Shown here: positions 3,792 through 47,873 of the stretch, piece by piece | Position numbering within the stretch: position 1 is the stretch's first letter | Layout of the letters: each line of letters opens with the position of its first letter | Virus record (IMG/VR): IMGVR_UViG_3300046665_000548 | Coordinates: 186,001 to 250,000 of that record | Length of the DNA stretch: 64,000 bases | Direction: 5' to 3' (one strand) | Translations under genes and position numbers: made by a program | Notes under the pieces: generated by a model | What the model was told of the DNA's origin: nothing | The model's input: the letters and a program-made list of their open reading frames with translations, nothing else | Database searches by the model: none

Positions 3792-4247
3792 TCAGGCTGC
3801 CAGAATATACTTACCGTAGAGCCCGACGAAATCCTTCCAGTTATGGACGGCTTTGGGGCTGAACACGACACGGTGAGTATTGAGGATTTCTCGCATGACA
3901 ACCACCGGAACCAATGCTTCGGGGGTGAAATGCAAGCGATCCAGGCCGAGTCTATCCGGGCCTTCGGAAAAAACAGCATGAATGCCCTGTATCATCAGGT
4001 CGTCACAGTCCATATCAACATCCATTCCGGAATACTGATCTAGAAGATACCTGATAAGTTCACAGATTTTACTGTTAAGAATCTGCTTTTGTTCTTCGGC
4101 TTTGCCGTGATCTTTGAATGCATGCCACGCTACGAGCACATCATTTGCTCGCGTCCGCGCCGTTTCATAGCCTATTTCAATGCTCACGGGCTCTAGCCCT
4201 CCCGCCAGACGCGGGCCGCATGTTCCATTGTGCATACCATAGTGCAT
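3792..4247 (-). CDS. Hypothetical protein (start uncertain)
   Basis: 151-aa ORF co-oriented with its neighbours. Confidence 0.5.
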   Translation of the reverse strand: MHYGMHNGTCGPRLAGGLEPVSIEIGYETARTRANDVLVAWHAFKDHGKAEEQKQILNSKICELIRYLLDQYSGMDVDMDCDDLMIQGIHAVFSEGPDRLGLDRLHFTPEALVPVVVMREILNTHRVVFSPKAVHNWKDFVGLYGKYILAA

Positions 4248-4376
4248 TCGTCAAGCCTAATGAGTCCAATTTTTCTATCCGACAACAACTCCTATATTCC
4301 GACATCGTTCCGCCAAATAGTAAAAAAGCCTCCGGGTTTCCCCGAAGGCTCTATATGGGGGACAAGTCAGAGCCGA

Positions 4377-41845: not shown

Positions 41846-43447
41846 GTGGATCAACTGAGCCCATTTCGTGAAATCGACTGGCAAAAAGAAGATGTTCAGG
41901 TGGAGCGCGCTGGTAAGCGCATCATCCTTCCGGGCGAGCCCGGCGAGATGCCTATCGATGATGCTATCAATGCGCTTCATCGAGTCAAAACCGACGAAGA
42001 GCAGCAGTTCAACGTTCACGAGGTGATCGACGCACATCCGGTCGATGCCATTGTGTCTTTCGTCGCTGCAATGCGTTCGATCTATGGATGGGCATCGGCA
42101 GTCCCGACCCCCGGTTTCTTCGGCCCCCGTCCGCCGCAGATGATCTCCATCAAGACCGGCCCCGACGCAGACGACGTGATCCAGGTGCCGTGGGGCAGCT
42201 TCAAGCTCCCGAATGTCGAGAACCTGATTCAGGTCGCGAACCAAGAGCATGAAGGACGCCCAGTCCTCATCATCCACGGAACGGTGCGCAAGAAAGAGCG
42301 CGGTGTTTTGCTCGAACTGGCCAAGCTCACCCGTGAATTCTTGAAGACTCATTCGATCTTCAAGGGCAAGGCATTCACCATTCCAGTGGATGAAGACGGC
42401 GACCTCGAAGTGATGGAGCCGCCGACCTTCATGGACGTAGCCAGCGCGAAGCGCGATCAGCTTCTGCTGAACGATGAGGTGATCCGGCAGGTCGAGACCT
42501 CGCTGTGGGGACCGATCCAGCATACCGCCCTTTGCCGTCAGCATCAGATTCCGCTGAAGCGTGGTGTTCTGCTTGAAGGCCCGTACGGCTGCGGCAAGTC
42601 TCTGACTGCCTCGATCACGGCCAAGCTCGCTCAGGACAACGGCTGGACCTTCGTCAACCTCGACAAGGTGCAGGGTCTCAAAGCGGCACTGGAATTCGCA
42701 GTGCGCTATCAGCCCGCCGTGGTCTTCGCGGAAGATATCGACCGCATCATGGAAGAGCGCGACGAAGAAGCGAACGATCTGATCAATACCATCGATGGCG
42801 TTCTGTCGAAGAATGCCGAAGTCATGGTGGTGCTGACGACGAACCACGTCGAGAAGATTCAGCCCGTCATGCTGCGCCCCGGTCGTCTGGATGCGGTCAT
42901 TCGTATTCCGGCTCCGGATGCGGCGACGGTCGAGAAGCTGGTTCATTTCTACGGGCGCAACCTGATCGACAAGGACTCCGATCTGTCCAGCGTTGGTAAG
43001 GAACTCGAAGGTCAGATTCCGGCAACCATTCGGGAAGTGGTCGAGCGTTCGAAGCTGGCGATGGTCGTTCGCGGCGAGACGAGTGTTTCGGGTGAAGCAC
43101 TGCTCGTTACTGCTCAGGGCATGACCCAGCATCTGGCCCTGCTCAACGCGCCAGTCGAAGAGAAGACCGATGCTGACCGTCTGTGGGATGCTCTCGGAAG
43201 CCTCATCGGCGGCCAGACCGGCAGCGGCCAGACTCCGCAACAGCTAGCAAACGCTGTGACGAACACGGTGTCAAATGCCACTGTGCAGACCGCGCGCAAG
43301 ATCGACCGCGCGGTGGACTCCATCGGTCAAGTTGCGATGGGCGGAGCCGCTGCGGTGGTCGAGCGCGTTGATCAGGCGGAGAAGCGTCTCGGCGCGAAGA
43401 TTGCCGATCCCGCGCCGAAGAAGAAGAGCGCCGCATTCGACCGCTAA
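41846..43447 (+). CDS. AAA+ ATPase (single module, chaperone-like)
   Basis: GPYGCGKS Walker A, VFAEDID Walker B, TTNH sensor 1, LRPGRLD arginine finger. Confidence 0.92.
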   Translation: MDQLSPFREIDWQKEDVQVERAGKRIILPGEPGEMPIDDAINALHRVKTDEEQQFNVHEVIDAHPVDAIVSFVAAMRSIYGWASAVPTPGFFGPRPPQMISIKTGPDADDVIQVPWGSFKLPNVENLIQVANQEHEGRPVLIIHGTVRKKERGVLLELAKLTREFLKTHSIFKGKAFTIPVDEDGDLEVMEPPTFMDVASAKRDQLLLNDEVIRQVETSLWGPIQHTALCRQHQIPLKRGVLLEGPYGCGKSLTASITAKLAQDNGWTFVNLDKVQGLKAALEFAVRYQPAVVFAEDIDRIMEERDEEANDLINTIDGVLSKNAEVMVVLTTNHVEKIQPVMLRPGRLDAVIRIPAPDAATVEKLVHFYGRNLIDKDSDLSSVGKELEGQIPATIREVVERSKLAMVVRGETSVSGEALLVTAQGMTQHLALLNAPVEEKTDADRLWDALGSLIGGQTGSGQTPQQLANAVTNTVSNATVQTARKIDRAVDSIGQVAMGGAAAVVERVDQAEKRLGAKIADPAPKKKSAAFDR

Positions 43448-43653: not shown

Positions 43654-44022
43654 ATGTCCGTTCGTTCAGCAACCGGTCACGACAAAATCATTGGGCAGAA
43701 GATCAGAGCCCGCCGTCTCATCGAAAAGATGTCCCAGGAGACGTTGGGAGAAAAGATCGGCGTATCCTTTCAGCAAGTGCAGAAATATGAGAAGGGCACG
43801 AATCGCGTCAGCTACTCCAGGCTGGTGCAGATTGCAGACACGTTAAACGAAGGCGTTTCGTTCTTCACCGAGGATACCAGCACGGTCAGTGAAGAAGGCC
43901 GCGCGATCCAGGAGGCAATGGCCCAGCCTGACGTTCAAAAAATTGCGCTCAGTGTTATGAGGATGACGCCTGTGATGAGAAAGGCGATCCTCGACTTCGT
44001 GAAGACACTCGAAGCCAGTTGA
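43654..44022 (+). CDS. XRE-family HTH regulator (alphaproteobacterial type)
   Basis: MSQETLGEKIGVSFQQVQKYEKGTNRVS. Confidence 0.92.
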   Translation: MSVRSATGHDKIIGQKIRARRLIEKMSQETLGEKIGVSFQQVQKYEKGTNRVSYSRLVQIADTLNEGVSFFTEDTSTVSEEGRAIQEAMAQPDVQKIALSVMRMTPVMRKAILDFVKTLEAS

Positions 44023-44376: not shown

Positions 44377-44591
44377 TGGTGGAGGCGACGGGATTCGAAC
44401 CCGCGACGCAGCCAGCACCCAAGCATTACCAAGGGCTGAAATTGGGTTTAGAACAGCGTTTCGCCGTATACCATTCACCATAGCACACGGCTGTATCGAA
44501 ACGTCCCCGCTTCCATTTAACTAGCTGCCAGTTTTACCTGGACCGGCATCCTGTTCTCCGGTGCTCTGCCGAGCGCTGAGCATTCGCCCCC
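44377..44591 (-). ncRNA. ssrA: Compact one-piece tmRNA (215 nt)
   Basis: GGGGGCG/CGCCTCC-ACCA acceptor with G3:U70, T arm GCGGG-TTCGAAT-CCCGT, helix 2 AGCACC/GGTGCT, PK1-like ATGCCGG..GTAAAACTGGCA, and an H5-like hairpin at 44463-44491 with TGA in the loop. Confidence 0.8.
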
Positions 44592-44612: not shown

Positions 44613-44687
44613 TGGAGGTTGAGGTGGGGATCGAACCCACTCGTGGAGGTTTTGCAGACCTCAGCGTTCCCATTTCGCCACTCAACC
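44613..44687 (-). tRNA. tRNA-Cys(GCA)
   Basis: GGTTGAG/CTCAACC, GAGGT-CTGCAAA-ACCTC, U73, CCA. Confidence 0.95.
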
Positions 44688-44688
44688 G

Positions 44689-44764
44689 TCAACGCGACAG
44701 GATTCGAACCTGTGATCCCCAGTCTCCCGAACTGGTAGGGACGGCCAGACTCCCCTACGCGCTG
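44689..44764 (-). tRNA. Atypical tRNA-Pro(GGG) (C33, A37, G38; no encoded CCA)
   Basis: CAGCGCG/CGCGTTG, A73, CCAGT-TCGGGAG-ACTGG, ACAGG-TTCGAAT-CCTGT. Confidence 0.75.
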
Positions 44765-45261: not shown

Positions 45262-45338
45262 TGGTCAGGGTGGCAGGCTACGACCCTGCGATTTCCTCTT
45301 CCCGAAAGAGGCGGATTACCAGACTTTCCCACACCCTG
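45262..45338 (-). tRNA. tRNA-Pro(CGG) with non-canonical T loop (GTCGTAG)
   Basis: CAGGGTG/CACCCTG, CCTCT-TTCGGGA-AGAGG, ACCA. Confidence 0.9.
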
Positions 45339-46376: not shown

Positions 46377-47873
46377 ATGTCCATTGATGATCTTTTGAAG
46401 CACTTCGAGATTTCGTATCCCACGTCCGAAGCAACGCTGCAAAGCGTATCCCCGATATGGGGCGGGGCGATTACCAGCGTCGAAGAGACGAACATGGAAC
46501 AGTTCGTCACCATCATGGAAGATGCCCAGACCGCGTACGAGCAGTGGCGGAACGTCCCGGCTCCTCGTCGGGGCGAACTGATCCGTATCTTTGGAAATCT
46601 CCTTCGAGAGAACAAAGAACAGCTTGGAATGCTCGTCACCGTCGAGAGCGGCAAGATCGTCTCGGAAGGTCTCGGTGAGGTTCAGGAAATGATCGACATC
46701 TGCGATTTCGCGGTTGGTCTCTCGCGGCAGCTATATGGGCTGACCATCGCGACCGAGCGCCGCGACCATCGCATGATGGAGACGTGGCACCCAATGGGCG
46801 TGGTCGGGATCATCTCGGCCTTCAATTTCCCGGTCGCTGTATGGGCCTGGAACGCCGCCCTGGCGCTTGTTTGCGGAAACGCGTGTGTATGGAAGCCTTC
46901 CGAGAAGACCCCTCTCACGGCCCTCGCTACGCAGCGATTATTCCTTCAGGCGTGTGAGCAGTTCGGATCGGATGCTCCGGTTGGCCTATCCGGGCTGATC
47001 ATTGGTGATCATGCAATCGGTAAGCATCTCGTGACGCATCGTCATACGAAAGTCATTTCAGCAACCGGTTCGACTCGGATGGGTAGGCAGGTTGCTGCGG
47101 CAGCGTCGGGTGATTTCAAACGCACCATTCTGGAGCTTGGCGGCAACAACGCGGCGATTGTCTCGATGGCCGCCGATCTTGATCTTGCCATTCGTGGTAT
47201 CGCGTTTGCTGCCATGGGAACGGCTGGACAGCGCTGCACGACGCTTCGTAGGCTCTTTGTGGATGTGACCGTCTATACGCCGTTCCTAGAGCGCTTGAAG
47301 GCAGCCTATTCGAGCGTGAAGATTGGCGACCCTCGCGAGCCCGACACGCTCATTGGCCCGCTGATCGACAGGAATGCCTTCGGAATGATGCAGATGGCTC
47401 TGGAGCAAGCTCGCAGCGAAGGCGGGACCGTTCATGGTGGCGAAGAAGTGGAGGTTACCGGCCGCGCTGGTATCTACGTCAGACCGGCTCTGGTTGAGAT
47501 GCCGGGACAAACTCCCATCATGCTTCGGGAGACCTTCGCGCCTATTCTGTACGTCACCGCGTATAGGTATTTGGAAGATGCCATTCAGATGAATAACGCG
47601 GCCGAACACGGCTTGTCGTCTTCGATCTTCACGAATGACTTGCGTGAGGCCGAACTGTTTCTATCCGCTGCCGGTTCGGATTGCGGCATCGCCAACGTCA
47701 ACATCGGTCCATCTGGCGCAGAGATCGGCGGCGCATTCGGCGGTGAGAAGGATACCGGAGGAGGTCGCGAGTCTGGTTCTGATGCGTGGAAGGCGTACAT
47801 GCGTCGCGCCACGAACACTATCAACTATGGCAGTGATCTCCCGCTAGCCCAGGGCGTCAAGTTCACAGTATAG
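46377..47873 (+). CDS. Aldehyde dehydrogenase family 7 (alpha-aminoadipic semialdehyde/P6C dehydrogenase-like)
   Basis: ISAFNFPVAVW, LELGGNN, GTAGQRCT, ETFAPI, GAEIGGAFGGEKDTGGGRESGSD. Confidence 0.92.
   Translation: MSIDDLLKHFEISYPTSEATLQSVSPIWGGAITSVEETNMEQFVTIMEDAQTAYEQWRNVPAPRRGELIRIFGNLLRENKEQLGMLVTVESGKIVSEGLGEVQEMIDICDFAVGLSRQLYGLTIATERRDHRMMETWHPMGVVGIISAFNFPVAVWAWNAALALVCGNACVWKPSEKTPLTALATQRLFLQACEQFGSDAPVGLSGLIIGDHAIGKHLVTHRHTKVISATGSTRMGRQVAAAASGDFKRTILELGGNNAAIVSMAADLDLAIRGIAFAAMGTAGQRCTTLRRLFVDVTVYTPFLERLKAAYSSVKIGDPREPDTLIGPLIDRNAFGMMQMALEQARSEGGTVHGGEEVEVTGRAGIYVRPALVEMPGQTPIMLRETFAPILYVTAYRYLEDAIQMNNAAEHGLSSSIFTNDLREAELFLSAAGSDCGIANVNIGPSGAEIGGAFGGEKDTGGGRESGSDAWKAYMRRATNTINYGSDLPLAQGVKFTV

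Follow-up and report, generated by a model that had tools for sequence, protein, structure and literature searches.

A previously undescribed family of approximately 215-nt alanine-type tRNA-like RNAs in the tRNA arrays of jumbo phages

Introduction

To our knowledge, among the large RNAs of bacteria and phages, tmRNA is the only established class whose tRNA-like domain (TLD) accepts alanine. The jakobid mitochondrial tmRNA that lacks an mRNA-like domain is a precedent for an alanine-accepting TLD RNA without a tag message. A second precedent is the tRNA cluster of phage T4, in which stable non-tRNA RNAs of unknown function are co-processed from the tRNA operon.

The DNA analysed here, referred to as the window, is a stretch of 64,000 nt corresponding to bases 186001-250000 of a 607,744-bp IMG/VR virus record that is rated complete. 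It contains, at 44377-44591 on the minus strand, a 215-nt element located in the tRNA cluster of a giant phage. An earlier note on this DNA had taken the element for a one-piece tmRNA whose tag lacks the Ala-Ala degron.

Comparison of the element with the one-piece tmRNA (SsrA; RF00023) revealed a G3:U70 acceptor, a T arm, an encoded CCA and a UCGRC-like D-loop word to be common to both; a long-range helix by the T arm that closes a large body may be a further common feature, and tRNA-like processing would also be shared. In contrast to the one-piece tmRNA, which is approximately 350 nt long, the element possesses a true D stem of 4 bp as well as an anticodon-arm-like hairpin, and has neither PK1-4 nor a conserved resume codon, tag and stop. 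The two-piece alphaproteobacterial tmRNA has the same kind of acceptor and T arm, the phiCbK copy having an identical GGGGGCG/CGCCUCC stem. It is carried by the same phages, and the TLD-proximal helix of the source phage copy uses GGAAC/GUUCU. The element differs from it in being one continuous RNA with the standard gene order and no ANDN...LAA tag. Like the class II tRNAs (Leu, Ser, Tyr, Sec), the element has four core arms and one more that branches off between the anticodon stem and the T stem, but this additional arm is a six-helix domain of ~133 nt rather than a hairpin of 3-7 bp. It shares its D-stem sequence and G3:U70 with tRNA-Ala, whereas its anticodon-like loop is 11-12 nt long and holds no alanine anticodon. 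The jakobid RNAs are much shorter than the element and have no internal domain.

Results

Genomic location of the element

The element was the final gene in a run of tRNA genes and began 21 nt past tRNA-Cys. Close reading of the flanks in three lineages placed the neighbouring tRNAs 5-21 nt from the element. ARAGORN analysis of the window revealed 12 tRNAs and no tmRNA. The element locus was blank in the GenBank records, with no annotation; in the Brevundimonas phages the element occupied an unannotated gap between two tRNA-Ser genes. Consensus scans for promoter and terminator signals at the element locus returned nothing above shuffled sequences, and no RNA run containing the locus was found.

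Two genes of the window (44688-44764 and 45262-45338, minus strand) were called by ARAGORN as tRNA-Pro (GGG and CGG), and both were below the Rfam tRNA gathering score. The first of these directly abutted tRNA-Cys (44613-44687), with no spacer, and its anticodon fell at position 37, which is unusual. Immediately downstream of the tRNAs were a 533-aa ORF encoding an AAA/STAND-type ATPase (41846-43447, plus strand) and a 122-aa Cro/C1-type HTH protein (43654-44022, plus strand). The window also encoded an aldehyde dehydrogenase (46377-47873, plus strand; Pfam PF00171, 422.9 bits), the closest phage match of which was 53.7% identical and was found in the 636-kb uncultured phage LR756504.1, itself without the tRNA-like RNA. 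Elsewhere in the same phage and outside the window (G000:C1:1944-2020 and 4091-4256), ARAGORN called two adjacent tRNAs with a CUA anticodon (amber-suppressor type, labelled Pyl) and one tRNA with the four-base anticodon GGAA. These tRNAs could be relevant to stop-codon reassignment or recoding in the source phage.

Homologues and covariation

A blastn search detected the element in seven of seven Brevundimonas pondensis jumbo phages (Dolichocephalovirinae), the matches covering 91% of its length with 72-73% identity. Pattern scans identified further homologues in a 543-kb IMG/VR phage (L140) and on two metagenome contigs (L296 and L323). The family comprised eight sequences from five lineages that shared 56-80% identity with one another, the window copy being the most divergent. 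Homologues scored 175-250 bits against a covariance model of the family, and the best matches outside the family were phage tRNA-Ala genes (34.6 bits).

No more members were found in scans of further viral contigs. No copy turned up when 185,579 genomes of bacteria and archaea were scanned, the bacterial genome scan giving 21 chance matches, and a search of phiCbK and the uncultured ~600-kb phages LR756504 and LR756511 with the family model found none. The IMG/VR pattern scan with GAGCACCGNNGAACAG gave only chance matches among the matches listed, the scan with CGGTCCNGGTAAANCNGG gave nothing but chance matches, and a scan with the 3' TLD end returned ordinary tmRNAs and tRNAs but no family members. 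Searching Rfam with three lineages, at the gathering scores and at E-values up to 10, yielded only sub-threshold matches to the TLD and left the inner domain unmatched. Additionally, no description of the element was found in the literature on phage tmRNA variants and unusual tRNA-like RNAs. The element family is a previously undescribed group of ~215-nt alanine-type tRNA-like RNAs in tRNA arrays, and its carriers are jumbo or huge phages of Caulobacterales-type hosts.

The structure was obtained by applying RNAalifold to a MAFFT alignment, followed by re-alignment with the covariance model built from it. The consensus contained 58 pairs in 10 helices, with 95.7% of cells forming standard pairs and compensatory changes on both sides at 24 pairs; none of 500 column shuffles reached any of the five measures. 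In a slid control, in which the 3' partners were moved by 1-3 columns, pairing was 36-50% and there were no more than six compensatory pairs. The fold of the window element had a z-score of -3.38. The element is real and not a chance fold. Its longest invariant words were GGGGGCG, ACCG, GAAC, GUUCUAAACC, GGUAAUGC, GGGUUCGAAUCCC and CGCCUCCACCA. From the 10-helix structure it follows that the molecule consists of a complete tRNA-like core plus a domain of ~133 nt at the place of the variable arm.

The tRNA-like core

The features of the core were as follows, in 5' to 3' order of the RNA:

44585-44591, minus strand: 5' strand of the acceptor stem, GGGGGCG, with G3 of G3:U70; pairs with 44381-44387, seven of seven pairs invariant in eight homologues
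44563-44581, minus strand: D arm, with a 4-bp stem (GCUC/GAGC) that covaries and an 11-nt loop containing UCGGCA
44542-44562, minus strand: anticodon-arm-like hairpin (ACL), with a 5-bp stem (ACCGG/CCGGU) that shows covariation and an 11-nt loop, AGAACAGGAUG, containing invariant GAAC
44388-44404, minus strand: T arm, GCGGG-UUCGAAU-CCCGU; the loop and three pairs are invariant and one pair covaries (G-C to C-G)
44377-44387, minus strand: 3' strand of the acceptor stem, CGCCUCC (with U70), discriminator A and encoded CCA; invariant CGCCUCCACCA in eight of eight sequences

The core is complete, with a 7-bp acceptor containing G3:U70, a D arm, the ACL, a T arm and an encoded CCA. The acceptor (G3:U70, ACCA), which the earlier note described as alanylatable, and the T arm were recovered here, the acceptor stem as GGGGGCG/CGCCUCC, and are invariant in the eight homologues. 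The D stem read GCCU/AGGC in L140 and GCCC/GGGU in L296, with double changes at two pairs and 100% of cells paired. The ACL directly followed the D stem; 95% of its cells were paired and it showed one compensatory change, a G-C pair in the window being U-A in the other seven sequences. Its loop was 11-12 nt long across the family and contained no conserved NGC.

As a tRNA-Ala gene, the element would have to be reconciled with a length of 215 nt as against 73-95 nt for a cloverleaf; it was also without a 7-nt NGC anticodon loop and gave no ARAGORN tRNA call. A 7-nt anticodon sub-loop within the ACL (AACAGRR) was considered and dropped, as it was incompatible with L296 and L323. An ancestral alanine anticodon in the J2/3 joiner (GGC or CGC before AA) is unproven; the U33 context occurred only in L296 and was absent in the window.

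The inner domain

A multi-helix domain of ~133 nt (HP2, H2, P3, P4, P5 and HP3) emerges at the variable-arm position. It was made up of the following features:

44528-44541, minus strand: HP2, a plain hairpin, CCAG-GUAAAA-CUGG; an A-U pair in the window is G-C elsewhere, 100% paired
44523-44527, minus strand: 5' strand of the long-range helix H2, CAGCU; pairs with 44409-44413, with double changes at five of five pairs
44516-44522, minus strand: J2/3, a single-stranded joiner, AGUUAAA, just 5' of GAA at 44511-44513; RGCAA in the other four lineages
44507-44515, minus strand: 5' strand of P3, UGGAA..GG; pairs with 44437-44446, with double changes at five of eight pairs and 96.8% of cells paired
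44495-44505, minus strand: P4, a small hairpin, GACG-UUU-CGAU; 87.5% of cells pair, with one compensatory pair, and its pairing is weakest in the window copy
44463-44491, minus strand: P5, a hairpin of 11-12 bp with UGA in or next to the loop; five of nine pairs show double changes
44445-44454, minus strand: invariant GUUCUAAACC (eight of eight sequences), in which CC is part of P3 and GUUCU is complementary to GGAAC/AGAAC of the ACL loop
44417-44436, minus strand: HP3, a hairpin with the invariant hexaloop GUAAUG (GGUAAUGC); three of seven pairs show double changes, and there are two U-U mismatches in the window
44409-44413, minus strand: 3' strand of H2, GGCUG, which ends 3-4 nt before the T arm

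The long-range H2 closed the internal body beside the T arm with 5 bp, all of which covaried, and its 5' strand was parted from the D arm by two hairpins. The earlier note had placed a different helix 2 here (AGCACC/GGUGCU). That helix forms in full in the window alone; six of the eight sequences break two of its six pairs. It also clashes with the D stem and with HP3, for each of which there is covariation support. The region read as a PK1-like knot likewise resolved into two adjacent plain hairpins with covariation support. The H5-like hairpin of that note is real: it is the covarying P5. Its loop sequence and stop codon were not conserved. The earlier note saw little room for PK2-4, and the element indeed has none to offer them.

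The complementarity between the ACL loop and GUUCU extended over 7 bp in the window and held in 97.5% of cells. Both words are invariant, and this putative pairing is therefore beyond the reach of a covariation test.

Comparison with tmRNA models

ARAGORN gave no call on the element, even at half the normal threshold, and relaxed runs gave inconsistent pseudo-calls. The element scored 31.9 bits against the Rfam tmRNA model RF00023, for which the gathering score is 47; only the two ends aligned and 269 central positions were skipped. The ARAGORN/Infernal check proposed for the tmRNA assignment consequently gave neither a consistent ARAGORN call nor an Rfam score above the cut-off. The homologues scored 22-31.7 bits against the same model, and ordinary tRNAs of the source genome scored up to 26.5 bits. 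In the 543-kb relative, the element reached 28.4 bits and was surpassed by a plain tRNA at 36.4 bits. As ordinary tRNAs score similarly, the RF00023 score signals tRNA-like ends and nothing further. Against the permuted tmRNA model RF04321 (cut-off 47), the window element gave a partial match of 11.4 bits, and the family gave 11-26 bits over the 3' TLD alone.

Analysis of the proposed tag

In the window, the frame from GAA (44513) to UGA (44477-44475) reads EAGTFRYSRVLW*, as the earlier note had it, and in the GGA register no stop codon precedes the 3' end. The GAA register was not preserved in the family: the Brevundimonas phages stop after five codons, L140 and L323 never stop, and in L296 the frame has UGA at the equivalent place. 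A GCA in the joiner before P3 was present in four lineages and absent in the window. The frame from this GCA stops at the UAA of GUUCUAAACC in the Brevundimonas phages and L323 (...AHAF) and at the UAA of the GUAAUG loop in L140 (...SPW), and has no stop before the 3' end in L296. No frame with a stop was common to all five lineages.

The spacings between conserved blocks differed by one or two bases, and the indels were not multiples of three. Inspected by eye, the J2/3-to-P5 block had two reading frames that appeared about equally conserved at the amino acid level, and the conserved blocks showed no codon-position pattern. This pattern fits a constraint on nucleotides and structure rather than on coding, as judged by the frame comparison by eye across the five lineages. 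No frame was singled out and the proposed EAGTFRYSRVLW tag is not supported in the five lineages. Without a conserved tag, the product would receive at most Ala or a lineage-specific extension and no conserved degron. A 'DRPxG' peptide resemblance was also considered and set aside, as it was accounted for by nucleotide conservation in P4 and P5. Taken as a whole, the analysis did not support a one-piece tmRNA carrying the tag (A)EAGTFRYSRVLW, as the frame and stop are unconserved, a D stem and ACL are present and the detectors were negative.

Canonical tmRNAs in the same phages

The source phage encodes a canonical permuted two-piece tmRNA (L352; G000:C1:576377-576796) that scored 102.5 bits against RF04321 and has the tag ANDNVAVSEYALAA (ARAGORN) with an ALAA degron. 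The statement in the earlier note that tmRNA of the host type is two-piece agrees with this. Permuted tmRNAs above the Rfam cut-off, each at 57 bits, were also found in Gurke (L353; ON529850.1, 153844-154189, minus strand) and Kabachok (L354; ON529852.1, 194435-194690, minus strand). By eye, the Gurke and Kabachok tags end in ...NDNFAAGERVLLAA, with an LLAA end. ARAGORN missed both of these tmRNAs, and the published description of the Brevundimonas phages reports that ARAGORN found no tmRNA (PMC10070969). Phage-encoded tmRNAs are already known (PMC7162821, PMC9004378).

The phage phiCbK has a two-piece tmRNA and no element, and the 543-kb phage has the element and no tmRNA above the cut-off. 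As the co-occurrence of tmRNA and element varies among phages, the element is neither a substitute for tmRNA nor strictly linked to it. The helix adjoining the TLD in the L352 tmRNA consists of CAGGAAC and GUUCUUG. It thus includes GGAAC and GUUCU, two words that do not vary in the 215-nt RNA. This sharing may be coincidence, as different words are found in the canonical tmRNAs of Gurke and phiCbK.

Partner proteins and neighbouring genes

No SmpB gene was found in the source phage genome. Outside the window, the source genome contains a 293-aa AlaRS-like frame and a 204-aa RF-1-type frame (G000:C1:29056-29742 and 528362-528637). The former partially matched the catalytic domain of AlaRS (PF01411, 50.9 bits) and the latter an RF-1/peptidyl-tRNA hydrolase domain (PF00472, 81.8 bits); both were found only in the source genome. 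Among the element-bearing phages, the SmpB, AlaRS and RF-1 families did not co-occur with the element, and no conserved ORF or protein neighboured it.

Discussion

Proposed function

That the RNA is alanylated can reasonably be inferred from its invariant acceptor/T-arm module. Selection for alanylation is suggested because G3:U70, the acceptor and CCA stay constant across lineages in which the internal helices change freely with compensation, and because a mere handle for RNase P would not require a wobble at this position. Any alanyl-RNA whose acceptor and T arm are canonical is a substrate of EF-Tu and the ribosome. On the basis of the conserved alanine identity, we put at roughly 40% the probability that the element is a non-canonical alanyl donor on the ribosome, with a role in rescue or recoding beside canonical tmRNA. 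The element would be transcribed together with the neighbouring tRNAs, excised by RNase P with 3' trimming and alanylated by AlaRS, and it would bind EF-Tu. The alanyl-RNA would then act on the ribosome, complementing the phage's own tmRNA in rescue or recoding. The D stem and the hairpin stacked on it probably mimic the tRNA arm that is replaced by SmpB, so that use of SmpB in the manner of tmRNA is unlikely; the ACL would take the place that SmpB fills in tmRNA.

Some points argue against a ribosomal role. The ACL loop of 11-12 nt is unusable as an anticodon loop, the ribosome might not accommodate a domain of ~133 nt in place of the variable arm, and no conserved partner protein was found, SmpB being absent and the AlaRS and RF-1 genes being in the source genome only.

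A more specific version of ribosome rescue, which we consider improbable, is that of a self-contained, SmpB-independent RNA with a tag of zero length. The ACL would present its invariant GAA (in GGAAC) pre-paired in cis with UUC (in GUUCUAAACC), the alanyl-RNA would enter the empty A site bringing its own codon-anticodon helix, and after peptidyl transfer and translocation a release factor would read the adjacent invariant UAA. If this were true, stalled chains would be freed with one extra alanine and no degron, and the RNA would be a second, tag-free arm beside the degron-adding two-piece tmRNA.

The element represents a second, structurally distinct class of large RNA with an alanine-type TLD, with a full tRNA core and a conserved ~133-nt domain, beside canonical tmRNA. 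Its coexistence with tmRNA suggests a form of phage handling of translation or tRNA biology that has not been described. As seven of the carriers are cultured Brevundimonas pondensis phages, the element is directly testable. It also shows that annotation with ARAGORN and Rfam leaves structured RNA genes in phage tRNA arrays unlabelled, ARAGORN additionally missing the two-piece tmRNAs of the Brevundimonas phages.

Alternative explanations

The element may instead be a decoy or sponge, that is, an abundant alanine-type mimic that titrates a host factor for the acceptor/T-arm modules of tRNA-Ala or tmRNA and has no role in peptide bond formation. The factor could be a toxin or defence nuclease that attacks tRNA, an enzyme of processing or modification, AlaRS or SmpB. 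The invariant acceptor, T arm and loops (GAAC, GUUCUAAACC, GGUAAUGC) would fit protein-binding sites, the element contains no conserved ORF, its anticodon-like loop is unusable for decoding and the source phage already holds a working-looking tmRNA. Against this, no candidate target was identified, a strict G3:U70 wobble and an encoded CCA are not obviously needed for a decoy, and a SmpB sponge would strike the phage's own tmRNA. We regard a decoy as unlikely, while still giving it appreciable weight.

Considerably less probable is that the RNA donates alanine to a non-ribosomal aminoacyl-tRNA-dependent transferase, for instance in modification of the cell envelope or of protein N-termini, with the extra domain serving as a specificity handle for a phage enzyme. 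The combination of a conserved alanine identity with an anticodon loop unfit for decoding would suit such a donor, and huge phages are rich in unknown genes, but no conserved gene adjoins the element. We know of no phage precedent for an RNA of this kind.

The possibility that the element is a miniature, SmpB-dependent one-piece tmRNA that resumes at GAA (44513) and adds (A)EAGTFRYSRVLW with no Ala-Ala degron is very unlikely. A TLD is present, the long-range helix beside the T arm may enclose the body in the manner of tmRNA helix 2, an A/U-rich run, UAGUUAAAU, lies ahead of the frame in the window with a stop at a hairpin loop, and L296 has the same-register frame with UGA at the equivalent place. 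However, the frame is unconserved, with the five-codon stop in the Brevundimonas phages and none in L140 or L323, and there is no codon-position pattern, two frames being about equally conserved by eye. In addition, the SmpB site is taken by the D stem and anticodon-like arm, PK1 is absent, the scores are below the Rfam and ARAGORN thresholds and the same genome carries a canonical tmRNA.

The idea that the element is a tRNA-Ala gene with an intron or insertion that is removed to yield an ordinary tRNA draws on the tRNA genes of the 543-kb phage, which carry insertions of 37-40 nt and one longer (a 220-nt intron according to ARAGORN), and on the resemblance of the D arm and next bases (GCUC...GAGCACC) to phage tRNA-Ala, but it is the least credible of all, as a loop of 11-12 nt that lacks an NGC anticodon would persist once the ~133-nt domain was deleted, the insert is shorter than a group I intron can be and matched no intron family at E-values up to 10 (three lineages), the inserted domain is itself under strong structural selection, and the phages already own normal tRNA-Ala genes.

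The unusual tRNA genes of the 543-kb phage (G001) were located at C1:79176-79289, 80138-80252, 100629-100786 and 116637-116828 (L368, L371 and L377). In some of its tRNA genes, the 37-40-nt insertions were hairpins in the anticodon region with the common sequence AAGCCUAU.AGGCG...UAGGCUU. Two longer tRNA-like genes measured 192 nt and 158 nt by RNA models and were assigned introns of 220 nt and 307 nt by ARAGORN.
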